This document shows, one piece after another, positions 16,101 through 39,400 of a DNA stretch of 64,000 nucleotides. Both the position numbers and the translations under genes were made by a program. This DNA is from Cyanophora paradoxa CCMP329. Its lineage: Eukaryota > Plantae > Glaucophyta. The notes under the pieces were generated by a model that was given only the letters and a program-made list of their open reading frames with translations, made no database searches and was not told the origin of the DNA. The DNA lies in NCBI GenBank assembly GCA_004431415.1, contig QPMI01000032.1:1-64000 (forward strand). The letters are read 5' to 3'. The first letter of the stretch is position 1, and every line of letters begins with the position of its first letter.

Positions 16101-18401
16101 CCCCCCCCCCAGCCGCCGCCCCCCGCCCCGCCCACGAAGAGGGAAAAGGGAAGAGGCTCTAGCGATTGAATTGGGCTCTAGCTATCTAGAGGCTATCCTC
16201 GCCGTGCGTGGAAGGGGAGCGGCTCCCGGCGGCCTTGACATCTAGGCTAGGCACTCGCCCACGGGACGATGTCGAAGCGAAGAGAAGGGAAGAGGCTCTA
16301 GCTATAGAGCTGTGGACATGCGCGACAGCCGTCCGCCCCCACCCGCTCTCAAGGAAAGAGAGGAGACCATCTAGAAACTAGAAGCGCGGCTTAAGGGCTC
16401 GCGCCCCTCCCGCGCAGGCGCTGCGGATGTACCGGCAGAGCAGATCTAATCTCTAGAGGCGCTGCAGAACTTTAGACTAATCACTAGATGTACTAGATGT
16501 ACCTGGTGATCGGAGACTAGATTCTTAGCTCGCGCTCCCCCCTCCCGCGCGTGCGCAGGCGCTGCGGATGTACCGGCACGCGACGGAGCAGGCGCCGGGG
16601 GCCCTACCCGGCGCCGACGCCCTCGTAGCCCCCGACCGGTCCGCCCCGCCCCGCCCACCTTCTCCCAGCTTCTCCTAGCCTCTCCCAGCCTTCACCCGGC
16701 CTTCTCGGAACTCAAGTTTGGGCTAAGAGGCTAGGGTCTTCTCTAGCTCCGCCGCGCCCCCGCCACGCTGCGCCCCAGCTCACTCCACTCGCTCGACCCT
16801 CGCTCACTCAGGTTCGTGCTGTACGCGCGGGTCGGGGGCCTCGCCTCGTCGCCCTCGTCGCCGGCTGCGGCGCGCGCGGCGGCCCCCGCCGACTTCGACC
16901 AGCTCGAGGTCGCCTGGCGCCGCTCGGGGGTGCGCGCGTTTGTTTCTGTCCCGCGTTTCCAGCCCCGCCCCTTGCACTTCCCTTTTCTCCCTTTATTCCG
17001 CGCTACGGTTACCCCCCCTCCGCCCTGCTCCCCGCTCCCTTCCATTCCATCCGCTCCCTTCTGGACCGCTTCTTTCTGGGACGGCCGCCCGCCGTACCCC
17101 CCGCCGCCCCCTTCCACTCGCTCCCCCCCCTCCATAGCTTCGCTTCTCAGCTTTGCGAGCGCGCTGTACCCCCCCCGCTCACCTTTTCCGACGCCCTTCC
17201 CCCTTAGGCGTGGGTCGAGCGCGCCCTGGAGACCCTCGACAAGTACCAGGCATGCGCACGCGTACCCCGCCCTCCCCCCCCCCCCCCTCTTACCCCGCCC
17301 CGGCAGCCGGCGGAGATCGACCTGTGGGGCGCGAAGGACGTGGGCAAGCCGGGGCCGGCCGACGTCGTCCGCCGCATGGGGCGCTCCCTCTCCACCGTGC
17401 GCTACGCCCCGAAAGCTAAAACATAGCTAAAGACATCAACATAAACATAGCTAAAACATAGCTAACATGGCTAACTAAAATGGCAAGCGAAGCGAGGCAA
17501 GCTAGTGGCCCCGAACTAGACTCAAAGAGCTGATATATATAGTAAACTAGAGCCAATAGGCGTCCTCAAAGTCCCCCGGCCCGGCCCTCGCCCCCCCTAT
17601 CGGCCTTCTAGCAAACCTGTCGAAACGACGGCCCCGCCCTAGCTACGCTTACTCGCTGTAACGTGGACCAAGCCTTGGCTGACGACACCCCCCCCCCCCC
17701 CCCCTCTTTCCCTCCCTCCCGGCGGCCGCGCAGCTGCTCTCGGCGCGCAACGACTTCGAGACGGCGCTCCTCTGCTTCCTCCAGCTCATGCGCACCCTCC
17801 GCGGCGCCGTGCGGACTTCCCCCTCACTCGGCTTAACTTCCGCTCCGCCTGAAGCCCCCCTTCTAAAATCTAGCGATGTCATAGATACAAACGCTCATGC
17901 GCACCCTCCGCGGTGCCGTGCGGACCTTTCCCTCACTCGGCTTAACTTCCGCTCCACCTGAAGCCCCCCTTCTAAAATCTAGCGATGTCATAGATACAAA
18001 CACTCATGCGCATCCTCCGCGGCGCCGTGCGGCCCCCCGCCCTCCCCTCCCCTCCCCTCCCCTCCCCTCACTCTCCGCTGAACTTCATCTCCCCTCTAAA
18101 TCTCGGAGCTCCCAAGCTTCCCCTCCCCAACTAAAATAGAAAACTAAACTAAGACCCTCTATAACCTCTCTATATAAACTTCCCCTTCCCCTCTAATATA
18201 AACTAAACTAAACTAAAGCCCCTCTATAAACTCTTGGAGCTCCCAAGCTTCCCCTCCCCAACTAAAATAGCCGCCGCGCAGCTCGCGGAGAAGGGCGCGG
18301 TGGACGCGGTGGACGCGGCGCTCGCGGGGGAGGGCCCCGCCGCGCCGGCGCCGGCGCCCGTCCCGGTCCTCCAGCTCGCCCCCTCCGGCTCCGGCTCGTA
18401 G
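7112..18401 (+). CDS. Large multi-exon coiled-coil protein with an axonemal dynein light chain (p28/AXDND1)-like segment and a C-terminal EF-hand-like motif; candidate ciliary protein
   Basis: ATG 7112 to TAG 18399-18401 across >25 exons. AELYNVAFDEALA/QVCEACQGAAADHLRSAW (~8160-8345) resembles the ELYSQCFDELIRQVTINCxERG motif. Coiled-coil exons (RELLRARNHITELESELATMR; ERLALLNRIEELEGENRR). Spliced LLRDFDDSRTGAISAAQFLALCRHL (15895-16050) is EF-hand-like. Confidence 0.55.
17785..18030 (+). repeat. ~110-bp tandem duplication (about 2.3 copies) spanning an exon end/donor site
   Basis: ctcatgcgcaccctccgcggcgccgtgcgg...tctaaaatctagcgatgtcatagatacaaac repeats at ~17785, ~17894 and partially ~18003. 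Differences are mostly CG>TG/CA. Confidence 0.85.
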
Positions 18402-18833: not shown

Positions 18834-20500
18834 CTACAGGCTTCTATATCTGATCTCTATGCCCTTGTCGAGGTAGTTGCACTCGTAGGTACCGCATTTC
18901 CCCATCCAGCGGAAGGAATACACGGAGACGAAGAGCTTGGAGCCGGTGCTCGTGTAGCGCGCGGCAGACCCCGAGGCGCTGTCGTAAATGTCGGAGACGG
19001 TACCCTCGAAGCCGATTTCCTTTATGAGGCTGGCGGAGCCGTCTTCGCCGTCGCGGAACTGGGCAGGATGCAAAGAAAGATGAGCGGGGGGTGCTTTCAA
19101 GGACTGGAAATCCACGCACCTGCATTCGAAGCCCGACGCGGTTCATTTCGCCTTTGAAAGACATGGCATCGGAAGCTGGATCCTGATAATACTGTGCGTA
19201 CGACAGATAAAACTCGATATTTCCCGTGCCATTTCCCGTGCCGACGTCCGCCGTGATGCGCCTGCGGCGAACGCAAAATCGGTGACAGAATCCAGATCTA
19301 ACAAGCTTAAGTCGACGTCGATCCGAATACTCACCAGTGCGTTGCCATGTTGGACGTGGCATTGAATGCAATCGCAGCCTCGGTCGCAGTCGCTGTGACT
19401 GCTGGCGGATTCACAACCGCGAAAGCTGCCTTGAAGCCAGTGAAAATCGGAATGCCGTAAGTGGCCTGCTGCTGATCTCCGACAGCGTTCCACCGCGGAC
19501 TTGTCTTGAAGCTGACGACGATACGGCTGGTCGGAGACACGAATTCCCGCCCGTAGTCGAGGTCAAACAGCCCATATTGCGTAGCGTTTGGTGAAGCCAG
19601 GAGCGAGGGCGGCGTCCCGGTCGTATTTGCGAAGTGCGCCGCGCTATCAAAGCTGTAAAGCTGCGCGCGGTCTTCAGAATTTGGGACACTTACAGGATAA
19701 TTAAGTAGGCATAAGCTCAGCGCACAGAAACAACATCCGGACAATCCCCCCAGGAGTCCTTGCATTGCAGGTGATTGGTTCCCCAATTGTATTCACTGCT
19801 GAAGACGTCCACCGTGGAGAAAGAAATTTTTATGAGGGACCCCGTCGGCGCATCCACCACCCTGCGCGAGCGGTCGTGTCGGTGCGTAAGCAGGGTTTAG
19901 TTATTTGATCTCCGCTTTATTTCGACTCCTCGTACCAGGTCGATTCCTTATTGAGGAGGTACCCGCTCGCGAAGGTGTAATCGAGTTCCTTGGTGGGGGC
20001 CGCGGAGGAGAGCGCGATAAGCTCGAAGCTCTTGACTCTGGCCGTGAACCCTTGAAGGTTCTTGTAGTTGTCCGAAGTGAAGCTTAGGAAGAGCTTGGAC
20101 TTGAGGACGCGGAGCGTCGTCTTCTCGGGTTGCCCCGACAGGAAGCCGCTGAGGCGCTTAATCTCGCCGCTGTCATCGGATATCTAGGTTCAAAGCGTTC
20201 GCCCGCGCCGGATTAGAGGATGGAAACGAAGGCACATCGCAGGATATTTCGCGTTCCCTCACCGAAACAAAATCTCTCCCATACTCCGTTGAGAACGTGG
20301 TGAACTCGAGCATGAGTCCATGCCCTGCTGGCGCGGTGATGGTCCTGCAAAATCGCTGGCGTCAGAATTGAAAAGCGCGCAGGGCAAGGCAGGTGCGCGA
20401 CCGCACCACTTCTCGTCGGCGTTAATCTTGTAGCGTGAGGCACCACTGCTGTCCTGGAAGTTCAGCCACGAGTTCGAGTTCACTTCCAGAAGAGTCGATC
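18834..20500 (-). other. Three tandem CUB-like domains at the receptor C-terminus
   Basis: A: YKINADEKW|TITAPAGHGLMLEFTTFSTEYGRDF..ISDDSGEIKRLSG..KLFLSFTSDNYKNLQGFTARV. B: VVDAPTGSLIKISFSTVDV..FVSPTSRIVVSFKTS..FTGFKAAF. C: ..YTSTGSKLFVSVYSF..KGIEIRY*. Confidence 0.8.
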
Positions 20501-23500
20501 CGTCCGAGGCCTTGGGCTGCGAATTCAAGCCCCCGCGTTAACGTTCGCAACACTCATGATCAAGGCTGCAGCGCGGACTAACCGTGGCAAACGAAGCCCA
20601 ATCAGCGCCGCTGGGTAGAGGGTGCGGCGCGATCCAGTCTTGGAAAGCGAGTGGCGTATTCACGTCCTTTGTGCCGACAAGGCGGAACGACTCGAGGTCG
20701 GGCAGTGGCGGGTCGGATTCGGCAAGCGACGTGGCTTCGGCCACGGTCTCGGGAGATTTTCCCGAGTCGCTTTGAACGAAGGCCCGGCACGAGTACTTCG
20801 TGAGAGGGGCGATGTTGGTAATGTTGGTCTCCGCGACGAGCAAGCTCGGCAGGACGCTCGACCTGCGTTCGTCGCTTCAACGGTCGCGACCGTCAGGGAA
20901 GAAGCTAGGGCGCATGCGCACCAGTACCGCCGCGACGCGCCGCAGTCCAGTGCGAGGTGAGGCTGGGCGGGGCTCGCGGTTGGGTACAGGTACGGCCGAC
21001 CCGTAATCCGCATCGGTTGCTCTACCGTTTGTGCGCTCTGTCCTTCCGCAGTGCACGTCACCGTGGCCGTCTTGGGTGCATCGTCGCCCGAGAACGTGTT
21101 GAAAACGAAGACTGTCAGTATTCTAGCTACGGACGTGCCGACGCGGATATTCTCCGGGACGATGCGGACGATAGGCGCCGAGGGAGCAACAGTCTGGCGC
21201 GGGGCATCCGGAGCCGCGTAGAGCGCTGCGGAGGTATCTTGCGCCTGGGATGTGAAGTTCGCGCACATCTTCGACTGAGCGCTGGATGCCGCCGTCCCGT
21301 TTCCGGTGCCGTAGACGCTCTCAAGCTCGGACGGAGAGAACGTGCGAGAAACGAGACCGCACGCCGCGCGGACGATTGTGTCTTGGGTTAGGTCCTGAGC
21401 ACGAAATAATGAGACAGGAAGGAGAATTCAAACTTACATAATATATTTTGCATCAATATTAATGTCGGAATGCGCATACCATGATGCGGAGGGCGAAGTT
21501 GCCGAGCATGTCCCGATACCGCAGCGCGACGTACCGCCTGCGGAACTCTGAATACTTTACGAAGCTTTAATTTCGAATAGCGGCGCAATGCAAAGGGCAC
21601 CCGTCGTCGCTGAGAATGGCCCTGGCCGGTAGAAGCTGGCCTTCGTCGACGTACCCGTCGTTTACGGGGATGCTGCGAGCGTTCTCAAAGGCTCGCGGGC
21701 CGTCCTCTAGATCCACGATGAGCAAGACCGTGAGAGACTTCCAGATCGCCAGGAAACGACCTACGCGCGTGTTTCAGTCACCGAAATTATCACCAAACGA
21801 AATTCAAGGAGACGAACCATTTTTAGAGGCCCGCGGGCCGTAGCGGCTGCGCTGCGCGAATCTGAACTGGATTGTTGGCGTTGGTTCGCGGTCGGGCAAG
21901 TAGTCGGGTTGCTCCGCCAGTGAGACGTTTACTGGGTCGAGATCCGACGACGCAAAGCCGCGCGCGGCTATCGCATCGACGACCCACAGCGTGCTCCCGT
22001 CCCTCGAGATGTAGAACGAGCAGTCGACTGCAGGTCTCGTCAGCTCGTTTGTGGCGCGCGCGATGCATGTGCATCACGCGGGGCGCACCAAACCCTGTGC
22101 TGCTCCTCGTGTTCTTTGCGAGGCGATGCTTGGCGTTCTGCGGCCATGGCCAGGGACGCTTGGCATTTCAAAGATGATGGGCGTATTAGAGAACGCGCGC
22201 ACCTTGAAATCGAAGTTGTAGTCCTCGTCCTGATCCTCCGTTTCGTCGTACTTGGCTTCCAAGCTGAGTTCAGGCGCCGCGAGATCTGTGAAAAATATAC
22301 AGGCACCTTGTCAGATCATCGAAAACGGAGCTAACGAGCTTTATATTGTGCTTGCCTGAGGTCTGCGGGAGATGCCGATAGACGTCGGGCTTCTCGACGC
22401 TGACCACCAAGATGGCGCGGCGGAGGTCGACGACCAGAAGGCCTGCAGTCTCCCAGAACGCCAGACGCCGACACGACCGAAGGCGCTCCTCCTTCAACGC
22501 TGCCTTCTTCGGCACGGGCACTATCGCCGACTGAGGAACGCCCCAGCTGCCGCTCTGCAGATGTGAATGAGCATCACAATGCATATATGACATCGATCGT
22601 ATCCATCGAATCGCGGACGCACGTCGTACTGAGCCACAGCCAGCATCACAACCTCTGCGGCCTCGGAGAAGCCCGAACGGCTGCCGGCCACGGAGCCATC
22701 CTTCGGACAGAAATGAGTTCCCGAAGGGCAGTTGGGCGCGAGGCCGATTGCCGTAAAGTTCTCGTTCTTCGGGATTTTCGTGACGAAGTGCTTCCAGGAT
22801 GGCTTCTCGTCGAAGATGATCGACATAGCACTGAAACAAAACGCGCAGCGTTTTCCGGCGCTGTCAAAGGCGGCAGCGTGTTGCACATCTTCGAAAAGAA
22901 GCAAGAGTCGGTCAGAACAAAGCGCAACTGGTGATCAAATATCGGCAGGCACCTGCCATCTGTACATGAATCGGGTTCGCATTGCCGCTGTGATCTCTCT
23001 TCCATTCTAGCAGGACTCTCGACGGGGTCCACAAAGGTTCGAAAGCGTCTCTCAAGCTCGGCTTTGCTTCAAAGATAGCGAAAGAATCCTTCGTTCCATC
23101 CGGGACCCGCGACTCCTACGCCACAGATTGTGAGTCAGAGATGACGGGCAGGGCTGACTAATCGCATGACTTGCCACGTACCTGGGAAAGTTTGTAGATG
23201 ACTCCGGCCATTGCAGCCCACTCGCCGGAGGCGTCGAAATCCATCGGCTTGTACGGCTCCGAAGGGGACGGGAAGAAGTTGGCCTGGTGCCCTCCAAGGA
23301 GCCCCGACGGGGCAGGTCGCGCGTAAGTCGAGTCTGGATACGTGGCGAACGTTTGCGGGTCGAAAGGCGTTGTTTCCCCGGCGAACGGCTCGAAAACGTG
23401 CGGCGCAGAAACGGTCGCGCCGGTCGACTCGATAGTCTTCGTGGACGCCGTCCATGGCCAGGGCTGGGCCGCGCTATCAGTCCGCCACGTCCTGCGCAGG

Positions 23501-26500
23501 TCGCGAAGCGATAAGAGACATTAACATTAACAGTCTAACAGATTCAGTATTTGACACACCAGCGGAGCGCGGGGGCAATTATGTTGGGGAACTGGCAGCC
23601 CCTTCCACTGGCACCCCTCAGCAGCGTCCCTCCGGTAGCGTTTAACGCCAAGAGATGTCCTGTTTTCGGGTGCTCGGCAAAGACTGCGCGTGGAGCGAAG
23701 GCGAGTGCGTGTGAGGGTTTCTGATTATATTATTCGGCATAAAGGTTTAGAATGCAATTCTGCAAAATCAGCGCACATCGGTACTTGTTGGAAGCGTCGT
23801 TGCAGTCTCGGCACTGGTCGCGGAACTCGAATACAGGCCGCCTGAATTTGGGGTGGGCAATCGCGACTTTGGGGAAACAACGCACAAGAAACTGACCCCA
23901 AAGTCGCGTCAAGAGTGTGCTGCATGGTTTGGATGCGGACAGGCTTGAGAATCTGGGTGGGCTGAAGCCGGTGGAGTTGATTCGAGTCCGGCCCGTCCAG
24001 TTCCCAGTAAGCTCCTATGCTCTGTCCGACGAGAAGGAAGTGGCAGTTGCCTCCGTTGGTGAGAAACAGGCCGCTGCGACGATCGACATTTTTAGTTGTT
24101 AACCCGCGTCATCATTCGAAGATGACCGATCACCTGTTTGGCCCAAGGTTGTTCTGAAGAGTGGAATCGTATCCTGCATCAAAGACGCTGAGTGTCTTGG
24201 AGTTCTCGTCGAAAATCGACTGCAGCACATTGCCATCGAAGAGAGCAGGGGACTGCACGCACAAGCTGTCAGAGTCAGACACAGAAAGGCAAATGCCAAA
24301 GAAAGCTTGCCTTGGTCTGGATCGTGATGCCCCCGCTGACCTTTCGAAGCCCTACCCGAGCGAAGTTTCCGCCCGAATCGGCAGCTATGAAATCCGACGA
24401 GTCAGAGGACCCGACGAGCGAGCGGATGTTGTCGCTCAGCGGCTTCAAAGTGATCTGAAGGCGCAGCGTCAGATCACGCTTTATATGCAGCTCTCCCACA
24501 ACAAAATTAAAAGACAGCACCTCGTGAATTCTTCGCAGGTCGCTCGACGGCCGAGTGTCGTGCACGGAAAACTCCCCGTTTGACTTTCCGACGGCCACCA
24601 GAGGTCCTCCCCCGAGCAGCAAGACCTGAGTATCCGAAGAGAAATCAAACTCATGAATGTGAGAATGATACCAGATAGACTCACCGACATGGCCTTTCTG
24701 CGCAGGTCGGATGCGGATCCCGTGTATGCAAAGCCGCACTCGAGATCCGCCACCTCCCTGCACGAATTCGAAGAAGCTCATGCACAGCTCATGCACACAT
24801 ATATGATGTGAAGGACACTAAATTAAAGCTAGCGAAAAGCTTCTCACCAGAAAGCAGAGTCGGCGTTAGCCTCTCCGTCTTTCAGAGGTTCCAGTGGAAT
24901 GAACACGAGCTGGTGCCGCACGCACGAGCCCGCCTCCGTCTGAGCGGACACGGATTTCCGTAGAGCCAGGGCTCCCAGCCCGCCAGCATCCGATTTGGAC
25001 TGCGCATGCGTGTCATAGGTTAGAGGGCAGTGTATGGTGCACGTGGCCGCTAAAACCTCCCATGGCACGGACCGTCCGCTTGTCCTGATCGTAATACATG
25101 AGGTCGATGAGCACAATGTCTGAACGAATTCGAAGGCGTCACAATGTCATGAAGCAAAATTAAATATTTACAGCTTATATAATTAAGGTTGCGCACCGGG
25201 ATCCGCCGCGTGAACGTTACCAGGCAAGTTTTCGCGGAACGCCGGGTTGTTGCTAAGGGAGAACTCGAAGGGGTAGACTCTGCGTTCGGCGGCGGTGGTG
25301 GCTGCTGCATTTGAACCCGATGCGGCTCCAGATTCGGATGCGGTGAAGTTTGTGCCGAAGATGCCGTACTCCTCTTGATACCAAAGCGTGCAGACCACAT
25401 CCTTCGAGATGCCGCAGCGTGTTTGTGCCGCGCTGATGCTCAACGTGTTGCACACAACCTCAATGTCGTTGCAGTCGACTTGACTGTCCCGGTCGGGGCA
25501 GTAGAAGTAAGAAATGTGCGGGCAGTAGGAAGCAGGTTGCGAGCAATAGTAGTCTTCGTAGTAGCAATTATAATCGAAGAACTGCAGAAGATTGCGTTTG
25601 TGGCCTTGACGCCGGGCCGCCCGGGCGATGCGTGGCGTTGGCTTGACGCTTGGTGTCCGATCGCGACGCCCTCGCAGCATCCCCCGCTTCCGAACCCCCG
25701 GAGAGGAGGTGGGGTACGGATCGGGCGAGCTCGTGGTGTACGGGTACGGGTCGGGCGAGGTGTACGGGTACGGGTCGGGCGAGGTGTACGGGTACGGGTC
25801 GGGGGACGTGTACGGGTACGACCCGTAGGGGTCGATGGCGGCGCTGAAAAGGTCGTTAAAGACCTTGGCGTCTTCGTCCGCCAGACCCTCGAGCGACACA
25901 GAATCAGGCACGAACAGCGTCTGCCCGAGCGGCTTCCAGGGCGTGAGAGACGCCAGGCTCCCCTCAGCCAGCTCGCCCTCCTCGTCCACACTGGGCCCGT
26001 CAAAGCCTCCAAGGACCAGGATCGACATAGAATAGTTCTGGTAGGTCTTCGTGCTGTTGAAGCGGCCCGGAAGAATCTTCTTCGGCGTGTACGTCGCGAA
26101 GAGGTGGTACGAGTGCGTGTCAAGAGTCGCCTCCTTTGTCGAGAAACCTTTTTTAGGTTTATTTCATTAGCGCTTAAGCTTATAATAACGTTTACTGTTT
26201 ATTTCATTAGCTTCGTTTGCGCACGCACCGTCCTGGCGGACGACGCCCACGACGGCGGAGCAGTCTCCCGCGACGCGGAGGTCGGACATGCCGAACGAAG
26301 CCTGCATCGCCGGGACAAGGTTGCGGTAGTACGACCCTTGGTCGGTCGTGCGGCGGTAGCCGTTCTCCGTGACTTTGACTCCGGATATGTCAAGGGAATA
26401 GTGCGTGTATGTCGCCTCGAGAGCAGCCGGGGAGACCGATGAGTCCGTCAGCGAAGCCACCGGGATGAAAAAGAAGCTGCCCTCGCCGGCCGCAACCAGG

Positions 26501-29500
26501 TACGTCTTGTTGGCATGAGTGCACGTGCCGTTCCCGGATGCGAATTGGAAGGCGGCGGGGTACGGGTACGATGCTTCGGCAAAGCTTGCGACGTGTTTAG
26601 GGCGGAGGCGGTAGGCAAACGGCCGCTCGAAGGATTGCGTCCCGAGCGCGAGCTCGGCCCCAGCGAAGGCGTCGGTCATCATTTCGGCAGTTTTCCACGA
26701 GCTCGGAGTAAACTGGCACAGCTCCGGACTGCTGGGAATGTAGCCTGCGCATGGCGGTTTTCCAAAACGCGAACGCCGCTGCATTCAGAAAGAATGCAAT
26801 CACATGCAAACGCACCCGCGTACGGAGCAGAGCTCTTGTCCTTGAAAGTGAGCTTGCCGTGGTGGATGCGAAGGGCGATGCGGGGAGCGAGGCGCGGCGT
26901 GTGCATCAGGTCTGGGTGCTTTGCCATGCAGTACGCCGTCTCAAGCTGCGGGCTCGCGGGGAAGAACCGCCAGGGCTCCAGCAAGTAAGCGGTCTCCCAA
27001 CCTGCGTGCGCGTTTCTCTCAGAGCTGATCTCTCAGATCAGAGAATCGCGCCGCGGCGGGAGATCGAAAGCGAACCCTTCCAGACGCCTTCGAGCTTGTA
27101 CTCTTCAGTGCCCCATGCGAATTGTGAGTAGTACGTCGTGGCATTGAGGCCGGGCACAAGCTCGTCCAGTGTCGAGCTGCGCATGCTGGCCTTCGTGGTG
27201 CTGTAGCTGTACGGAACAGACTCGGCGGCCAGCACGACGACTGTGTTGTTTCCTGCGCAGCCGCGGACGTCAAACCGCACTTGCTTTAATGCAAGTCTTC
27301 TTTATGAATGGAGAGGCGAATTCACACCAATGAAGACGTCGTGAATGTCGAGCAGGTAGTGATTAGAAACGGGATCCTGCCGTTCGAGGCATCCGCGCTG
27401 CTTTGGCTTCTCCTTGCTGTAGATGATAAGGACGCCCGTGACACGGGGCAGGCAGCCGAAGCCGTCGTCTTGGCACACTGGCGTCGAGCGTGTTATAATT
27501 AGAGTGCAAAGCGTGTTAGCGTGCAAGTCCTCTTACCTGGTTTCTCGAAGCCCATCCGCCTGTGCGCGCGGGTGAATAGTCGTCAACAAAGTTCAGAATG
27601 CAGGATTAATTTCGATCGAGATCATTTTGATCATGAGCTTGCTCTTCGGCGCACCGAACGTGGATGAAGACATCGCCGTAGTTGTCTACGAGGATGCGCA
27701 TCGAGGAGAGGTAGTGAGGCCAGAAGCTCGTCTTGTTGGGGCTTCCCGAGAGCGTGTCCTCGATAGTGTGCGACAGCTTCATGCTGCGGCCTTCGAAGAC
27801 TTGCGCCAGGAGCTTCATCTGAAAAACATAAAATGTAACTGACGTGACTACAATAGACCGCTGACCAAAACGCTGACCTGAAAGGTATCCTCTGGGCGAG
27901 ACGGGTTCCGGCGAGACGCAGCGGACGTTGTGGGCGCGACGATGCCAGCTGCGGCGATGACAGTGAACTGGTTGTTGGGCGAGCTCGACGTGAACGTCTG
28001 CAATCGCTGGTCAGATTCTCTTCTTCGAAAACAATATGCGTCTGCAGCAACTGCGCGCCTGGAAATCGAAGAACGAGCGGCTGTTCGCGAATTCCTTGAT
28101 TGAATAGTCGCTCGTCACTTCCTCGAAACCTCCGTCGGCACGCAGACCGCGCCGCCGGCGGGCCCCGGTGCGCGCTCCCCCCGTGTTGATGAACTGGGAG
28201 CTGTAGCTCTCAAGGATCGAGCGGAGGGTGTCCTCGGCGGCCGCGGCGACTTTGGCGGCGGCGGCCGTCATGTTGGTCCCGCTGCGGCTCGAACCGAGGG
28301 CCTCGAGAGCGTACAGAAGCGAGAGCTCTGGATCCTTGGCCGACACGGCTGCAGAGATGCTGCGCAGGATATGTTTATTTATAACAAGCGTGGGAGGGTA
28401 CGAGCTCACCTGGAGCGGTCCGTAGCAATTTTGGCTTGGATTTCCGCCTCTTTCTGAGCGGCGACGGCGAGCGCCTGCGCAATTTCGGCCCTTTGCTTTG
28501 CAGTGAGGGCCTGTTCTCGCGAAAGGATAGCCTCCAATTGAGCCTGTATCGCTTCGTTCTTAGCTAAGAGGGCCGCTTCGGCGTTGGCTGTCGCATTCTG
28601 CCAGACGGCATCAGTCTCTGCGTTTTCGTCTACAATGCACGCGCAAGCAAGGATACCTTCTCAGCTAGCTCAGCGGCTAGCTGTGCAGCCTTAGCTTCGG
28701 CCTCCTTCTGTCTAGCGAGCTGCAGCCAGAATGCGCGACCGTTAGATTGCAGAACACGGTGCGGGGGCACGTGCACGGTGCTCAAAGCCGCACCGCCGCA
28801 GATTCCTCTGCCTGCTTCTGCGAAGCTTCTGCCTGCTGCTTTGCGACAGAAGACTGAACTGGATCGAGACCTCAGTGAACGCAGCATAATCGAAATATAT
28901 TGGAACGCACCAGCCAGCACAATGGAGACGATGAGTGCAAAGGAAAGCACTGCACATGTGCACGAAAAATAAATCAGATCGATCGACATCGACGCTAGAT
29001 CTTGCGACGTGCGAATGACACCCCCGAACGCACGCGTGATGACGATGAGCGTGATGATGGATTTTATGCGCTTCTGTGCGTTTGCATCCTTGACGCTGTG
29101 CCTCACCAGGACCTGGCGCGGGCGAAACACATAAAAACCGCAGCTGCGAACAAATCACATATCATCGAAAACATGATGTCGCACAAAATGTTCCGCAGTC
29201 GGTTCCTGGTTTTTGGTTGCTTTCTCCTTGTCATCTGCCATTTTCTCATCCTACGCTCATCAAGTGAGCGAGATATAGATATATGGAGCGATTGAGATAT
29301 ATTTGTGGCGGCGCACTTTCGAGTTCCCTGCACCGGCGCCCCCCAGGTTTTTCAGTTTTTTGAGTTGAGCCGCTTTCTTCGATGCTGCGATCCAGCGCTG
29401 CGCAAGCGACGCCGGCAGAAGGTCCGGGAAGGTCAACCCACGGCTTCCCGCTTGCTCCGGGTCCGTCTTTTTCAGCCAATCGTGCGCCTCCTGTCAACGG

Positions 29501-32500
29501 TAAAGCAGAAGCCGCATCAATATTAATATTGGAATGTTGACAGTTTCATGTTCGCTCGCGGCGACGGGCCGGGAACGCTGGAGCGCACTTGAAGAGCGAA
29601 ACCCTTCAGCAAGAATGCACTTGCTTTCTTGCGCTTTTCCTTTTCTATCTGCGGGGGCACAGAAACTTTGTAATGCGGGGAAAATAATGAGGGTCCTGGC
29701 GAACCGTGCTGAGCATGGTATCGGCATCATCGAGGCTGGTCCACTTTCTCTCCGGGTCGATTCCGAGAGCTGGCAGTACGTATACAGACAGTGCCTCAGC
29801 AAGCTAAAGGCTAAAGCCTCCGAGTAGCGGCTCTAGCATTTCGCACCTTCCTTGTACTTGTCCACGCGGAGAGTCAGCTGCGTGTGCAGGCGGGTGCCTT
29901 CGACATCGAGCTAAGGAACGCCAGTCAATTGCAAGAAGCCGTCGCCTGCGGGGGCGATCGATGAGCGGGAGCAGTTACCTTGATCGCCTCGATCATGTTC
30001 TTGACAGATTCATTGAACCGATCGAGTTCGTATATCTCGAACTTCTTGTTCTGCGCCTGCTTGAGTTGGTCGAGTTTTTTGGAGTCAAGGTGAAGCAAGT
30101 CCACGAAGTCGATTTTCTGCCTGCTCGCGATCGGGCCAGAGTCGGACCGGGGCAGCAGAAACCGCGCGCTGGGCGCGCGTGAGCTGCGGAGCAGGCGTAC
30201 GGACCAGCGGTAGATCTCCTGCAGGGTCATCTTCTGTCGTCTGCCATATACAAGGCTCTTGATTAGAACGATCGAAGCACGAAGCACTGCGGATATGCAT
30301 ATGCTATAGTCGATCTTATATTGTGCCACACCGCCAAAAGCCCTCGGTCATGCTCTTCTTTTTGTTCTCATCCGGTTCTGCGTCGATCTCATCTTGTGAA
30401 GGCGGGAAGTCTGGCACCGTGACCATTTCCGACTTCAACGGATACTCGTACTGGATCTCTCCCCTCTCGTCTCGGATCGGGACTCCGTGCGCGTCTCTCT
30501 TTGGTTTCCAGTTACACTCGACAATGACCATTCGCTTCTGCTGCCTCTGAGCGTACTCGAACTCTGCGGCGCGGGCGTTAGCGGTGCGGATCCGGAGAAA
30601 CATTAACTCCACTAGTACTTATTACAAGGCTTTCGTCTCACCGTCGATACTGAAGAACCGAAGGAGAGGAGCGTCGTCGTTCGAATCAAGCTTTAAGTTC
30701 GAAACAGTTGGAATAATAAACGTACCAGTAGGGAGACGTGATCCACTCTGTTCACGAGAACGTATGTCAGCTAGCGCACAAATCATGGCCCGCGCGCGCT
30801 CAATGCAAGGGACTCGCCCTGAGTGAGTAGCACGAGAACTGTTGACGAGCCCTTGATCGCTGCGTAGGCGCGTATACGTACGTGCACGTGAGAAACGGTT
30901 TTTGATCGAAACAAAAACGCCAAGGCGGAAGCGGGCGCTTGCACCGGCCGCGATGGATTTGCCCCTGTGAGCGGGAATGTCAGCTCAGCAAAGCCGAGCT
31001 CGAGGCGCGCGAGCGGGAAGCCTCTAACTAAAACAAGGCGCACCATTGGACACCCTTGAGAATTCCTGACAGATGCGCGAAGAAAAGCGAGACCGTGCGA
31101 GACTAATTCAGCCTCGTGGATTCAAACCGCGATGCAAATTCAACAGCCGCACCGTTCTCGGTGTTTACATCGACCCAGAACTTGCCTACGCCGTTCTCCT
31201 TCAGGATCTTGCACAAAACATTCATCTCGCTGGTCTGCGCGCGCTTGTAGCTGTACACGCATCGGGACGCATCAGCAGTCGAGCTCAAGCGTTCTGATTT
31301 AAATTTAGAGTCGGTTCAGCAGAGCCTGCGTACGAGATCATCACATCATATGTGTTGATGGGCGTTCTGGCGTCGGGCTCGACAACCGAACTCCCGTAGG
31401 GCTGCGGTTCCACCCAAGCTTGAGTTTACACACGCGCACGAGCAGCAAGGATATATAAGGATATTGAAACATGTTTAAGTTATGTTCAGTTTTATAAGAG
31501 ATAGCAACCAATGCTTTTACTTCGAATTCGTTGTTTAAATAATCGCGTGCGCACCCGCATCTCTTTCACAAGCGATTCAAGCGTCAGGTAGTATTCCTCG
31601 CCTGCGCATCAAGCTTAAGCGAAGATGCATATGGCAAGAGATCTCGATTCGCATTCAAAGCAAGAGAATCGGAGTCGCTCGCCTTTAAGAGCCTTGAGGG
31701 GACGTGCGCTGATTTCTTTGAGCTTGCCCGCAACTTCGGCGGCCCAGGTGTGGCTGCCAGCCGCGGCACAGGCCTCCAAAGAAACCCCGGAGCCGATCAT
31801 AAGGGGAATCACTTTACGCGGGAGCAGCAGGGCGTGTTTAACCTCCCGAAGGCAGGCCCTGCCAGGAAGTTGGAGAAAACGCGGCTCTGCCAGGAGTTGC
31901 AGAAGCTGTCACTCACTGCGACTGGAAGAAGTCTGCATATGCATGCACTAATCGTCAGCGCAGCGATAGCGATCCACGCTCGGCGTTCTCTGACCTTTGC
32001 TGACGATGACGATGACGCACTCGGATCCCTCGATGGCCGCAGAAACTCGCTTCCGGCTGCCAGCATAGAATAACGATCGTCACCAGTGCGTATGCAGATG
32101 TACAGATCTAGAAAATCACTGCCAATGCGCACCGCGATATGTCTGTGATGTCTCCTTTGTCTTCGGCGCCCCTCCGATCGAACCAGAGCTGTGGAAAGAC
32201 GTCACTCGCACGTGGGTATGCACATCCGTCGCAGCTCGTGAAAATCGCAACAGCTTGCCCTCAGGCCATGCTTCTCCAAGTCGGATGTCAGGGTATCCAC
32301 ATGCTTGCGGTCGACTTCGACTCCGCGAGCGTAGCACACAAATCTGCACAGCCGAGTGCGCCCAGAACCTTCATCAGATGCGCAATAAGAGGTACCACGG
32401 TTCGGGCGGAGTCGTTTCGGCCGCACGCGTCGAGGAAGTCGACGGCGTGCTCGGGACGCGGGTCCGGCAAAGGCATATGGTCGTAGTCGACAAAGGCTTT

Positions 32501-33300
32501 CGATGCCATTCGGAACTGCGTGCACGTGTGTGCGAGCACACGTTAAAAAAGGCGCTGCCGGAAGGTTGCAGCGTTGCGACGCGGACCGGTTGGTGCTTGG
32601 CGGACGAGCGCGAACGCTCCACTGCCGGGGCTCCGTCAACCAAACCTCTCATTCCGAATTCGTTCGCTCCGTTCGGCGAGAAGGACACCGAAGGCGACTT
32701 CGGATTGCCAGCAAAAGCCTGATCATGAGCATGTACGCGAGGTGGGTCGGAGCCGGTCATGATCATCAGGATGCGATATGTAAATGCAGCTAGAGTTCGT
32801 TTGGAACTTTGAAGTGCAAATAGCTATAGTACTCGCACCGGCTCCGCATGCTTAGACGATCGCGAGTCCCGGAAACCCGACCGGCTCGAGTGAAGGCTGG
32901 GGCCAGATCTCTGCGCATGCGGTAACATAATATTAATGGTGTAATTAAACGCTGGCATATCAATCGACCCACATCAAAGGATTTGAACGCTACTCGCGCG
33001 CTTATCGCACGCGCACGCACCACCTGCACCCGAACGTCATCCGCTGACACCGGCCAAGGCGCGCTTGCCGGGTCCGCCGTCAGGTAAGCGGCCTGACTGG
33101 GATACGATGGCGAGGTGCCGTCCATCGCGTAGGCGTAGCGCTTCTGGTTCGGAGAAGCTATTTTCGAGCTACGGGCCGGGCTGCTGCCGCGATCGCGCGT
33201 GCGCGCGCTGGGACAGCCCGAACTAATCTGAGAGTGCTACACTGCGTGCGCGTGTCTGATCTGCAGCTGTCCAGCAAGCTTCTCGTTGTGCATATGCTGC
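18834..33300 (-). CDS. Giant type II membrane receptor: TIR-TIR / bacterial-type linker / TM / coiled coil / degenerate beta-propeller with Cys-rich inserts / FN3 / 3x CUB
   Basis: Manual splicing gives TIR1 and TIR2, then a continuous in-phase frame from the post-TIR2 linker through the TM (KRIKSIITLIVITLLSFALIVSIVLA), coiled coil and DPELSLLYALEA. Further ectodomain exons follow on the same strand to TAG at 18834-18836. The 5' start (33100-33800), the TIR1-TIR2 junctions and some mid-ectodomain junctions are unresolved. Confidence 0.75.
20700..21200 (-). other. Fibronectin type III-like domain
   Basis: APSAPIVRIV...TATVTCT...ETNITNIAPLTKYSCRAFVQSDSGKSP matches the FN3 'I.NL.P.T.Y...V.A....G.S' motif. 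Confidence 0.65.
25713..25825 (-). repeat. 24-bp coding tandem repeat (PDPYPYTS)x~4 in the receptor ectodomain
   Basis: ORF 25183-26028: YPYTSPDPYPYTSPDPYPYTSPDPYPYTTSSPDPYPTSSP. Confidence 0.9.
28910..29070 (-). other. Single transmembrane helix of the TIR receptor (N-in topology predicted)
   Basis: KRIKSIITLIVIT|LLSFALIVSIVLA|V across two introns. Basic residues lie on the N-terminal side (positive-inside rule) and an Ala/Gln/Glu coiled coil follows. Confidence 0.8.
30510..31270 (-). other. TIR domain 2 (TIR_2-like), includes 22-nt and 8-nt microexons
   Basis: CVYSYKRAQTSEMNVLCKILKENGVGKFWVDV...AYAAIKGSSTVLVLLTQ|EWITSPY|CID|EFEYAQRQQKRMVIVE. Microexons 30726-30747 and 30642-30649 have AG/GT flanks and restore SPYCIDEFEYA. 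Confidence 0.88.
31790..32345 (-). other. TIR domain 1 (TIR_2-like), five exons
   Basis: Spliced: FVCYARGVEVDRKHVDTLTSDLEKHGLR|LWFDRRGAEDKGDITDIS|RKRVSAAIEGSECVIVIVSK|DFFQSQ|ACLREVKHALLLPRKVIPLMI. Matches the TIR consensus FISY..D...L...L...G..VW.D...AI..S..VI.V.S..Y..S..C..E...A....K.VIP. Confidence 0.9.
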
Positions 33301-34340: not shown

Positions 34341-34584
34341 CGGTAAATATTGATGGTGCTGCATATTTATAGAACAAAACATTTTTCGGCAATCTACCTG
34401 GGTAACCTGGCCCAGTGGTAGCCGAGAATTCTCAGGGGTAGCGCTGTCTCCGCATACAAATTAAAGCCCTAGCCCCTAGGCGGCGGTAAATATTGATGGT
34501 GCTGCATATTTATAGAACAAAACGTTTTCGGCAATCTACCTGGCCCAGTGGTAGCCGAGAATTCTCAGGGGTAGCGCTGTCTCC
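34341..34584 (+). repeat. ~100-110-bp direct repeat, two copies (34341-34451, 34484-34584)
   Basis: cggtaaatattgatggtgctgcatatttatagaacaaaac...gagaattctcaggggtagcgctgtctcc occurs twice, with a ~9-bp indel. Confidence 0.9.
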
Positions 34585-36062
34585 AGAAAGTGGCAGTTTT
34601 GGCGAAGAACCAGTACTTATCATAGTATATTTCAGTTTTGGCGAAGTACTTATTATTTCCTTTATCGAAAAACAGCGTACTACTTAGTTGTACTCAGTGA
34701 CTGTTAGTCTGTCACACTGTGACAGTCTTGCAGTACTGTAAAACATGTAATATTCAGCGTAACGTTTATGGCAAAACCCGAGAAATGCGCCGAAATTCAG
34801 CAAGATCTAGACAGCCAGTCCGCCTATAGCTAGGCGGGGGGTACATTGACTCTTCTCCTGCAATACATCTGCGAAATTCTTGCAGATGCAAATATTCGGC
34901 GCCGCAGGGCTATGCGGCCGTGTCGGAGATTTCGTGTTTTACAGTAGCCTGTCAGTAGGCAGCTGATTCGACCGTTTCGTTTGCTGGCGTCGCCTGCAGC
35001 TGGCGACTCAGTGGCGAGTTACTTAGTGGCGACCGATTCGGTTTGCATGTGACAATGACGCTTGACGTGAGATACGTCACCGTGTCGGGCCGTGAATTGC
35101 ACGTGACGTTGAGCGTTACGGGAACTTACGGCCCATCTTACGGGCAACTTGCGGGCCGACTCACGGGCCGGAGTCACGGCCCGGAGTCACGGGGGCTCAG
35201 ACGTTTTTTTTATTTTCCGAAACTTCGGAAGTTCGAACTCGCGATAAGTTTGAACTTCAAGGCGCGCCGGCGCTCAGATCTAAATCTCGTTTTCAAAATT
35301 AATATTGAACTCGAACCGATCGCGATTCGCGAGCCCGCGGCGGCGGCGGCCGCGGCGCGCGTCGCCGGCGCCGACTCGGGCCGATTCGCCGAGTCGACGC
35401 CGACTCCCCGCCGGCGGGCCGCCGCCGTCCCCGGCGAGTCGATTCGCCGACCGCCGACCACAGTGCCCGGCGGCCGCCACGCTGCCGCGCCACATGTACA
35501 GCACAGTACAGGGGGCCACGCTGCCGCCACACTGCCCCGCCGCGCCCGGCCGGGCCGTGCATATGTAGTACCGTGTGGACGGTGTGGTCCGTGCCACGGT
35601 GTAACACTGAAGTAATGCGCGCACTTAAGTAATGCGGTCCCAAATGAATGCGTTTTCCGCTGGCTAAACGCATTAATTTAATGCCGCATTCGGACTCCGG
35701 GTCCGAACACGCAGTAATTACTGGCCCGTGGCGCATTAATTAAGTGTTATAATTACACGGTACGGGTACGGTACTACGGTAACCGTCGAACGTGTCGCAA
35801 TGTACACTTTGTACACTGCAGCCTGCGCATGCAAGAGGGCGTCGACTCGGCGAAGAGGCCTGCATCCGACGCGGAGCGCGAGCTCGAGGGACGGGACTCC
35901 GGGGAAGAGACGAAACGCTGACGCCCAAGGGACGCGAAGGCCCTACCCCCCCGAGAATTCTGGCGGCTGCAAATATTCGGCGCCGCGGGGCTACTAGTAT
36001 GCTGAATAGCGCCGAATATTAAGTGCTGACGGACATTTCATGTTTAACAGTATGTCGCCGAG

Positions 36063-36483: not shown

Positions 36484-39400
36484 ATGTCGGCACAGGCTGC
36501 CGATCGGCGTTATTCACTCCTTACGCATGAATGGATGCATAACGTGCGCTTATGATTCATTATATATACGTCGAAGCTCATGATCATGCATGAAATTAAA
36601 ACGATGATACGCGTGTACGTGTGCAGCTTGTCGACCGCAAGTTCCGCCACGTGCGTTTGAATGTGTTCCGGGCGGAGCTGTATCTGCTCGCCTTCCGCTC
36701 CCGCAAGGTGCATTAATATTGATGTTGCTCAAGATCGGAGGGAGCTCGAGCTCCGCAGCCACATGCCCCCTGTTGAACGCTCGAGCTCTCAGCTGTACTG
36801 GAACCTGATATGGCACCTCGCGTTTTGTACGCTGTTCTTCGCGCTCATTCTCATCTTCCTCCCCACCGATACGGCGAACGAGGTGAGGTAGCTACAGGAT
36901 CTCAGCTGGATATATATGGAACTCTGCATACATATGCATGCTCACGCTTGCTCGCGCAGCACGCGTCGCAGCTGGCGGGAGAGGGCGCACTCTTCAACAT
37001 CATTCAACTTGGAAGCGACCCGGAAGCCTTCCTAGCTGTCTCTCAGGTGCGCATGCCGCGTTGCTGATCTTTAGCGCTAATTATAACTTTCGCGATTCAT
37101 GATCATGATCATTGACATCGATTCTCGTACTCGCACTCGCTTTCTGCAGCATGAAGATTTCTACAACTGGATCAAAAGGCGGTTGCTGCCCCTTCTGGAG
37201 CCGGACAGTACCCTTTCGGGATACATGTGCGCGTGCAATCGTCATCGAAAAACGTTGTCAAGGATCGCTTGTAAACATAAAGTCGCAGGCGGCCGGTGGG
37301 GCTCATTCGGATCCGTCAGGTTTGCAATACAAATTCGATGCTAATCATAAGAACATGTAGCTTACTATCATGCACATGATCACGATATAAAAAAATGCAG
37401 GTGCGGGTGAAGCCGAAAAGCGACTGCAACTCCAATCCAATCACTCTGGTATCCTCCGTCTTCTACCCCGATGCGTGCGCGATGCATGTGCATATGCAAA
37501 TGGTTGCCATCGATATGCATCTTGCCATCACCGAGTCGATATACATCTTCATACATATGGTGAACACGCGGTACCGCGCAGGCTGTGCTTCCCCCCATAC
37601 GATCCGAACAACCTAGATGAGCGGGCTCCAATCACTGGAGTTTTAACAGGCCAGATATACCAGTGGGAGGTGAGACTCCAGAAAGCCAGATTCTAAAACC
37701 GTCAACGTTGGCCCATAATCACGTCGTCTCCTGCAGCCGGAGCGGGCGTCGCTGTTCGGCTCCTACACCTACTGGAGCTCCTGGCCGTCCTACGGCAATG
37801 GCGGCTACGGCGTCAACCTCGACCCGCGCAACCACTCCGAGACGCTCCGAAAGGCACCAGTCTCCCCATGGCCACGGGTACCGCGTCGCTTCTGCTGACT
37901 TTAACGTTGAATTCGATTCCAGATCGAAGAGCTCGAGAGGGACAGGTTCCTTGACGGTGCGTGCTCTTTAATTTCTTTTAGATTGCGAGCTCGCAATTCG
38001 CAAGCCGACGGACTGCGACCGCCAACGCCCAGAGTCCACGCGTGCCGTTGCGCTTCACATGGCTTTGTACAATCGGCACACCCGCGTTTACGTGGTCGTC
38101 GACGTCGGTGCGGATACTTCCCGCAGCATTTCTATCTATAGGTCTAGGTCATGGGCATTGCAACGTTGAGGGGAATTGTACATGCTGCTGATGTTCATGT
38201 ACCGCGCAGGAGTTGAAAGTTCCGCTCCAGGTGCGATGGCTTCAATCCGCCCATCTGTACATGTGTTCCCGTCCGGGATTTCGAAGAAACCTCACCTGTT
38301 CCGCAACAGGACTCTTCGTGACTTACTACCGCGTCCGTCCAATGCGGCTGCAGCTGCTGGAAGACAGAGTATGGATCGGCTTTAGGAAACTTGCGTATCC
38401 CTCATCATCACGATCGCAATCGGCAGGCTCTCTTCGGATTCTGCATCCTCTTTATCATCGGAATCTCGTACTTTGGTTCGCGACCGCCGTCACAGTTCAA
38501 AGCGAGATTTGCGTGCTCTAAATTCTAATTTGTTCGCCCTGGACAGCCTTGGGCGAGGTCTGGGAGCTTGCCAAGTCGCTTCACGACAACAAGGGTCGAA
38601 GCTACTGCAAGGACCCCTGGAACTGGGTCGAAGTGAGAGAAACCGAGATTACCGCTCCTTTACTTTAAATTAGTATCCCTTATCCAAATCTGACCGTGGC
38701 CGGTGCCTTTCAGATCTCGATTCTAACGATCTTTGTCGTCGTCGTTTGCTACTGTGCTGACTTCATCGTACGTCGCGTTAACAAAATCTTTTCATCGCTC
38801 TGATTGCGACGTCGACGTCGTCATCAGCACGAGAGCCGACGCATTCGCGATGCCCTCGCGGCGGATGCAGTGAACTCCTATATCGATTTCCAGCAAGCGC
38901 GGCGCATTTCGGAGGTACTTCTGTAGCTATATATCATCTTGCACGCCGGATAATGCGGATCAAACGTCGCGATCGCACCTGCACCTTGCACAATTCACCA
39001 CACACGCTAACAATTACGATTTGAGCAGATCCTTACGGACCTTGTTGGCCTGAACATCCTCCTCCTCATCCTTCGTAGCTTCAAATTTCTTCGGCTCAAC
39101 TCAAAGCTCTCAATCGTGTGGTGCGCCAGCACTCCTGCAGCTGATCGGGTTTTCAGACATATCTCCTGTCAGCGCTTCCGCGGTCTGCGGAAACTGTCTT
39201 GCGATTAATATTCGCATCTGCAGGACGACCCTGAGCCTTGCAAAGTTCGATCTGCTCTCTTTCATCTCGGTCGCGATCATCATATTTGCAGCCTATGCCT
39301 TCATGGTTGGCAACCCCGAGGATTTACGTATATTTTGCTATCGCTGACGTCGATGGCTTCATCGCGAGCAGGGATACGTCGTTTTCGGCTACCAGGTTAC

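Follow-up and report, generated by a model that had tools for sequence, protein, structure and literature searches.

The present study analyzes a gene on the minus strand of contig QPMI01000032.1 from the glaucophyte Cyanophora paradoxa CCMP329 (assembly GCA_004431415.1), lying in positions 1 to 64,000, the stretch referred to here as the window. The gene (18834..33125) has 66 coding exons in a model based on splicing and on collinearity with paralogs, and encodes a predicted type II receptor of about 3,167 amino acids, in which two TIR domains are followed by a linker, a single transmembrane (TM) helix, a stalk and a large ectodomain ending in FN3 and CUB domains. The structure of the gene, the order of its domains, the relationship of the scaffold to a bacterial family and the conservation of the TIR glutamates are established; a plasma-membrane location, ligand-induced clustering and NAD cleavage are what we infer beyond them. 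Taken together, the patterns are probably best explained by a messenger-making, single-pass type II receptor that descends from bacterial TIR-TM-WD40 proteins and belongs to an expanded family, which is real, multi-copy and apparently undescribed in eukaryotes.

The gene model was built by hand from the three reading frames of the minus strand, with scripts checking frame, hydropathy, composition and motif positions, while similarity searches used single exons or database proteins as queries. It runs from an ATG at 33125 to a stop at 18834 through 3,167 open codons, or 3,168 if an alternative in-frame donor for intron 1, which scores slightly better, is used. The 65 introns are 50–153 nt long (median 71), with 59 GT and 6 GC donors and with 58 CAG, 5 TAG and 2 AAG acceptors, and retention would lose the frame for 62 of them. 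Leave-one-out splice scores were 6.8 bits for donors and 5.9 bits for acceptors, compared with −1.1 and 0.3 for other GT and AG sites, and GC content at third codon positions (GC3) was 0.66–0.80 across all parts of the gene compared with a GC content of 0.51 in introns. A DNA contig covering 27500-33400, perhaps from the same sample, shows zero differences from the window in that region. Exon-by-exon Pfam scans were near blank (TIR_2 E 0.15; CUB E 0.064). An open chain of codons is by itself weak evidence for such a model, and the real check is collinearity with paralogs.

An earlier note, made from the letters of this DNA, had proposed that small exons splice into two TIR domains bearing SQACLRE and SPYCIDE and that one gene continues from these into the ectodomain. 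Both motifs are present in the 66-exon model, and most of exons 4-59, queried singly, align in order on a paralog, P0004 (tig00020848_g14611, 2,350 aa), with many boundaries abutting. Because the P0004 prediction is a single protein that contains two TIR_2 domains and is collinear over exons 4-59, the TIR part and ectodomain are taken to form one gene as the note had it; the case for a single gene rests chiefly on this collinearity, in which one prediction is compared with another. Exons 4-37 likewise align in order on P0009 (tig00001181_g7418.t1), the closest paralog, except for micro-exons, exon 18 and the TM and stalk exons, which are missing there. Exon 58, used as a query, matched a 1,003-aa protein at 100% identity together with paralogs, all from Cyanophora paradoxa in EukProt. 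The identical protein, tig00000139_g8297.t1, matches the last third of our model except at the exon 52/53 junction, and joins FN3 to the CUB domains. It begins at a methionine within exon 51 as called by AUGUSTUS, the Cyanophora gene models being BRAKER/AUGUSTUS predictions (PMC6704402). Residues before that methionine match a propeller blade of a paralog, and the methionine is therefore internal.

There are at least six loci of the family in the Cyanophora genome, with further copies on tig00020904, tig00000955, tig00001181, tig00000523 and tig00000630, some of which are possibly alleles, or two parts of a single locus. No homologs in other eukaryotes were found among the matches listed; one match from Homalodisca (P0003) was discarded as a repeat artefact. 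Another paralog, P0007 (tig00020904_g15278.t1), contains a near-exact internal duplication of about 550 ectodomain residues, reflecting either recent tandem duplication or an artefact of assembly or gene model. The published model of P0009 lacks the TM exons and the TIR2 glutamate and P0011 is truncated, gaps that are probably AUGUSTUS errors at micro-exons; such errors may conceal the family in proteome surveys.

The protein begins with a low-complexity cytosolic N-terminus lacking a signal peptide (exons 1-4, 32432..33125), of which exon 1 matches the N-terminus of P0007 and which ends in a family motif, PLPDPRP. TIR1 follows (exons 4-10, 31557..32431), with its catalytic-position glutamate codon at 31845-31843 in SQACLRE, and then TIR2 (exons 11-20, 29979..31347). 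In the SPYCIDE motif of TIR2 the glutamate codon is split between an 8-nt micro-exon (30642..30649), encoding C-I-D and the first base of that codon, and the following exon, and paralogs read YCIDEF or YCLDEF at the same place. TIR2 is the better conserved domain, at 74-76% identity between paralogs compared with 37% for TIR1, and the TIR1 glutamate is nevertheless conserved in six copies (the window gene, P0004, P0007, P0008, P0009 and P0011). Both glutamates are conserved in all well-modelled copies, and in both TIRs the residue sits at the catalytic position in helix alpha-C. The best matches of TIR2 among solved structures are two enzymes, the RPP1 TIR and Cat1; aligned by way of P0004, TIR2 places its glutamate in register with that of RPP1 (WCLDEL).

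Between the TIRs and the membrane lies a helical linker (29059..29910) with insertions and with the motifs HTxL..R, LLxG..L..A..WL and PT, homologous to the linker of bacterial relatives. The single TM helix (exons 26-27, 28911..29058; KD19 3.05) is the sole hydrophobic helix by hydropathy, at about residues 671-692, with no signal peptide ahead of it. It is followed by an Ala/Gln/Glu/Lys-rich stalk of coiled-coil type, judged from composition and from its bacterial counterpart (exons 28-30, 28410..28858), and by a helical motif, DPELSLL (28200..28359), which it shares with bacterial TIR-WD40 proteins. There are several signs of an N-in, type II topology, as had been proposed from the raw sequence along with the single helix: a positive-inside pattern (four K/R before the helix, two after), 20 of 21 N-glycosylation sequons and 36 of 43 cysteines after the helix, and a position after it for the FN3, the CUBs and the convertase-like sites. 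One of these sites, RRRRGLR (28140..28160), lies just past the DP helix, and an RRxL-type polybasic motif occurs at this point in each of the five Cyanophora copies that extend across it, against 0 of 17 bacterial proteins. We take it to be a furin/S1P-type cleavage site; nothing was found in the literature on RRxL-type furin/S1P cleavage in algae.

The first match outside Cyanophora was a bacterial TIR-WD40 protein with the linker motifs and DPELSLL. A profile search recovered about 100 bacterial TIR-linker-TM proteins, and a genome scan found at least 79 bacterial loci, mostly in Chloroflexota and Cyanobacteriota. Because the first profile included a bacterial sequence, separate Cyanophora-only and bacteria-only profiles were made and compared with each other (hhalign). 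The non-TIR region of linker, TM and stalk matched with a probability of 97% (E 1.7e-10), and the last two propeller blades with the closing motif, a region outside the search profile, matched with a probability of 95% (E 2.2e-8). Hidden Markov models (HMMs) of the bacterial linker, DP and closing motifs, each weak alone, scored the expected exon best of 1,999 peptides from the window. A TM segment follows the linker in 173 of 177 bacterial relatives, two TIRs occur in none of the 177, and the TIR glutamate is invariant in all 98 that were aligned. The outer heads of this bacterial chassis appear to be interchangeable: in seven proteins (P0040, P0070, P0073, P0079, P0086, P0095 and P0099) it carries an FGE-sulfatase domain, of C-type-lectin fold, or SH3 instead of WD40. 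Searches elsewhere with the short motifs gave nothing real: a Cupriavidus match to the DP and closing motifs in plasmid tblastn was a chance match in the opposite frame, and an ESM Atlas search with the DP exon was blank.

The receptor thus appears to be a eukaryotised bacterial TIR-TM-WD40 sensor and not a Toll-like receptor (TLR) by descent, and the phrase "inverted Toll-like receptor" of the earlier note should be dropped in that sense, as the linker-TM-stalk and the end of the ectodomain match the bacterial family. Eukaryotic additions would include the second TIR, the convertase-like site, glycans, FN3 and 65 introns, together with the CUBs in the window copy. Transfer from bacteria to alga is the simplest reading of the distribution. 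In a phylogenetic tree the Cyanophora TIRs had branches 4-6 changes per column long and fell, with no support, outside the two cyanobacterial clades, and a plastid (cyanobacterial) origin is neither supported nor excluded by it.

The ectodomain begins with a large propeller-like region of about 1,700 amino acids (21480..28139), rich in N-glycosylation sequons, that is probably a diverged and expanded beta-propeller. The proposal of a propeller ectodomain holds for the last blades, by the profile match given above, and for the rest the fold is probable at most, with one PD40 hint, one blade-HMM match and three other segments aligning weakly with bacterial repeats. Exon 39 (25197..26147) is an insertion particular to the window copy. 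It contains YPYTSPDP repeated in tandem (25712-25820), a further two polybasic sites (25582-25692) and a module rich in cysteine; both ends of the exon match paralogs. The region closes with a helical motif, AC..SR.F...EL...C (21263..21394), homologous to the bacterial C-terminal AC..anRnLT..EW..Y...C and diverged in the window gene, where the W is lost. The FN3 domain (exons 58-59, 20724..21184) is common to all copies that include this region and is backed by Pfam hints in paralogs and by a fold match. Of the three CUBs that had been read by eye, CUB1 (20019..20483) is clear, with a Pfam score of 43 bits against a cut-off of 21.4 and matches to cubilin and MASP, and the other two are better described as divergent and CUB-like: CUB2 (19406..20003), with insertions, and CUB3 (18837..19393) fall below the Pfam cut-off and resemble CUB1 (z 10 and z 4.9, respectively), CUB3 also matching ESM Atlas CUB clusters at 0.91. 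A single-sequence CUB structure model was discarded (predicted local distance difference test, pLDDT, 33). In all three (20003-20483, 19406-20003 and 18837-19393) the conserved Trp codon is interrupted by a phase-2 intron and a phase-0 intron follows it, a pattern that indicates tandem duplication of an exon block. The full-length paralogs P0004 and P0007 stop after FN3 and have no CUB, and the CUBs appear to be a private addition of the window copy. No leucine-rich repeat (LRR) or immunoglobulin (Ig) domain was found in P0001, P0004 or P0007, and no NTPase of the NB-ARC/NACHT type in the full-length paralogs, where the linker runs straight to the TM helix.

The neighbours of the bacterial genes suggest what such TIRs may do. 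In seven of 79 loci, from five phyla, a DUF4231/SLATT gene lies directly upstream of the TIR-TM gene, and in four of the seven it is accompanied by an LSDAT SLOG gene of TRPM type, giving operons of LSDAT-SLOG, DUF4231-SLATT and TIR-linker-TM-(WD40) (L038:1960-3406, L080:2098-3392, L062:1468-3355 and L005:1271-2408; SLATT is also upstream in L003, L007 and L015). PADLOC gave no match for the SLOG or SLATT proteins examined. SLATT effectors read TIR-made cyclic ADP-ribose (cADPR) in type VII Thoeris (10.64898/2025.12.03.692087), and most eukaryotic TIRs assayed gave cADPR without NAD+ depletion (10.64898/2026.04.20.719644); for these two reasons a receptor that makes a messenger is favoured. 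The SLATT and SLOG neighbours suggest nucleotide signalling, and SLOG-SLATT-TIR-TM-WD40 is a candidate for a Thoeris-like system, so far undescribed, whose sensor would lie outside.

We therefore envisage a mechanism as follows. TIR1 and TIR2 would lie in the cytosol and the stalk would dimerise, while the ectodomain, nicked by a furin/S1P-like protease just past the DP helix, would remain attached. Binding of an outside macromolecule, such as a microbial surface, a virus or a neighbouring cell, to the variable propeller/FN3/CUB part would move or cluster the stalks, and the conserved linker would allow TIR pairs to come together as an active complex that cleaves NAD, in which two chains contribute four TIRs, TIR2 being the main catalytic unit. 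Plant TIR-NLR tetramers hold four TIRs, the same number as two receptor chains. The product would most likely be a cyclic or linear messenger of ADP-ribose type, read by a separate effector.

Head to head with the receptor, 3.4 kb from its ATG, is a many-exon gene for a polycystin-2-like channel with C-terminal RyR repeat(s) (36484-44565, plus strand), in which RyR passes Pfam at 43805-43963 and the PKD part was judged by eye. It is tempting to regard this PKD-RyR channel as the effector, but this is adjacency at one locus alone. A fuller version of the proposal is that these proteins form a class of glaucophyte surface immune receptors new to eukaryotes, type II proteins of bacterial origin that mature by proteolysis and whose pre-paired TIRs convert an outside ligand directly into an ADP-ribose-type messenger, possibly gating PKD-RyR, with an undescribed Thoeris-like ancestor (SLOG-SLATT-TIR-TM-WD40) that had an extracytoplasmic sensor; we regard this as possible, at somewhat short of an even chance. 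Two repeats flank the receptor gene: upstream of its start lies a direct repeat of about 110 nt whose copies are nearly identical (34363-34587, by eye), and downstream of its stop a 109-nt tandem repeat (17784-18044; 2.4 copies, 91%) in G-rich, low-complexity DNA.

Several observations weigh against the messenger-making receptor of bacterial descent. A glutamate at the catalytic position is not proof of NAD cleavage, about 90% of the bacterial loci have no linked SLATT or SLOG within 3.5 kb, and the 64-kb Cyanophora window encodes neither. The tree places Cyanophora on very long branches with no supported sister that would mark a donor lineage, plastid ancestor included. Over most of the ectodomain there was no Pfam or blade-HMM match to WD40, and both AlphaFold models had low confidence; one of them (mean pLDDT 45) had the FN3 strands as its best part, and the fold search returned FN3 domains (TM-score 0.75 by target) and propellers for this low-confidence model. 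P0004 lacks the bias of sequons towards the post-TM side. The published annotation splits the locus and spans the last third alone, and the weakest junction, intron 38 (26228-26148), has AAAAAAG as its acceptor. Two RNA-type runs, of unidentified strain and without a control gene, gave no alignment to the gene, and 17 listed RNA-type runs contain next to none of its words.

Three other explanations were weighed. The first is that the receptor is as described and its TIR pair is an executioner, such that an activated receptor depletes cytosolic NAD+, with death or arrest of the cell in the manner of SARM1 or TirC and no separate reader of a messenger. Two glutamate-bearing TIRs per chain would suit a potent enzyme, a TM-TIR of bacterial origin in Dictyostelium, TirC, acts as a toxic NADase (PMC13142454), most bacterial relatives lack a linked effector gene, and silence in standard cultures would fit a dangerous gene. 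This is nonetheless unlikely given the SLATT/SLOG partners upstream of bacterial relatives, which indicate a messenger, and the cADPR made without NAD+ depletion by most eukaryotic TIRs assayed. Alternatively, the family architecture may be real and the window copy silent, decaying or split, through failure of intron 38 or because the CUB tail or the last third (g8297) is a separate transcript, so that the full TIR-TIR-TM-propeller-FN3-CUBx3 chain is never produced, which is possibly consistent with the lack of RNA support in the runs examined, the weak AAG acceptor at 26148, the AUGUSTUS gene start inside exon 51 and the absence of CUBs from P0004 and P0007. Against it stand 3,167 stop-free codons over 65 regular introns with GC3 well above the GC content of introns, an internal published start preceded by residues matching a paralog blade, exon 39 ends that match paralogs and a published model that itself links FN3 with the CUBs; we consider this explanation quite improbable. 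Intron 38 also carries a duplicated 15-nt stretch and lies outside the stretch covered by reads; a homopolymer error or a regulated splice point is possible there. The weakest alternative, in which the TIRs are non-enzymatic scaffolds that recruit other TIR proteins as in canonical TLR signalling, or the protein is mainly an adhesion or cell-wall sensor, draws on TLR2 and IL-1R9/10, which keep the glutamate yet are inactive (10.64898/2026.04.20.719644), and on CUB and FN3 as common adhesion modules, but is very improbable given that all well-modelled copies retain the glutamate and its neighbouring residues in both TIRs despite the divergence of TIR1, and that the best solved matches of TIR2 are enzymes.

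Comparison with known systems supports placing the receptor nearest to the bacterial TIR_2-TM-WD40 proteins of Chloroflexota, Cyanobacteriota, Actinomycetota and others, with which it shares, in unchanged order, the TIR glutamate, the linker, one TM helix, the coiled coil, the DP motif, the end of the propeller and the closing motif. It differs in having two TIRs, an ectodomain at least about twice as long with WD40 barely recognisable, a convertase site, glycans, FN3, CUB and 65 introns. The bacterial proteins are annotated as "TIR domain-containing" or "WD40 repeat protein", and no functional study of them was found in the literature searched. Animal TLR/IL-1R are likewise single-pass receptors joining an ectodomain to a cytosolic TIR, but their order is N-terminal LRR or Ig, TM and one C-terminal TIR (PMC7075850), whereas the Cyanophora order is reversed, with two TIRs, without signal peptide, LRR or Ig, and with bacterial TIR-WD40 ancestry. 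The contrast once drawn with TLR TIRs as lacking NADase activity is outdated, since cADPR is produced by the TIRs of TLR4 and of some invertebrate TLRs, whereas TLR2 is inactive despite retaining the glutamate (bioRxiv 10.64898/2026.04.20.719644). Of domesticated bacterial TM-TIRs, the closest earlier case is TirC, of the TirBCD family, a bacteria-derived NADase with a possible TM helix in a protist (PMC13142454), but it is small, derives from TIR-STING-like proteins, has its hydrophobic helix N-terminal to one TIR and lacks a large ectodomain. Thoeris (type VII with TIR, SLATT and cADPR; SLOG types) resembles it in using a TIR as signal generator and in the SLATT/SLOG genes upstream of bacterial relatives, although ThsB proteins are cytosolic phage sensors and the Cyanophora protein spans a membrane and carries its sensor outside. 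Plant TIR-NLR/TNP and red-algal TIR-NBARC-WD40 proteins, also in Archaeplastida, share an N-terminal catalytic TIR and a C-terminal repeat sensor, consistent with the RPP1 match, but are soluble and contain a STAND NTPase, whereas none was detected in Cyanophora and the TM helix separates TIR from sensor. A literature search in which subscription papers were partly covered found no description of a TIR-TIR-TM-ectodomain architecture, in agreement with the note that had drawn attention to it; the Cyanophora genome paper (PMC6704402) makes no mention of TIR or receptors, and supplements of recent TIR surveys make none of this family or of Cyanophora TIRs.

Surface TIR receptors have hitherto been animal (TLR/IL-1R), and plant TIR enzymes are intracellular. 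A multi-copy, intron-rich TIR-TIR family of reverse topology in the smallest lineage of Archaeplastida would mean that surface TIR receptors also arose along a separate path, from a bacterial protein and not from LRR or Ig modules, and it offers a clean way to ask whether a ligand on the outside can activate a TIR enzyme through a membrane and what a built-in pair of TIRs does. Alongside TirC, it would be a further case of an immune-type gene from bacteria, old and fully domesticated, in a protist, and it highlights a common and unstudied bacterial family whose SLOG and SLATT neighbours predict nucleotide signalling.

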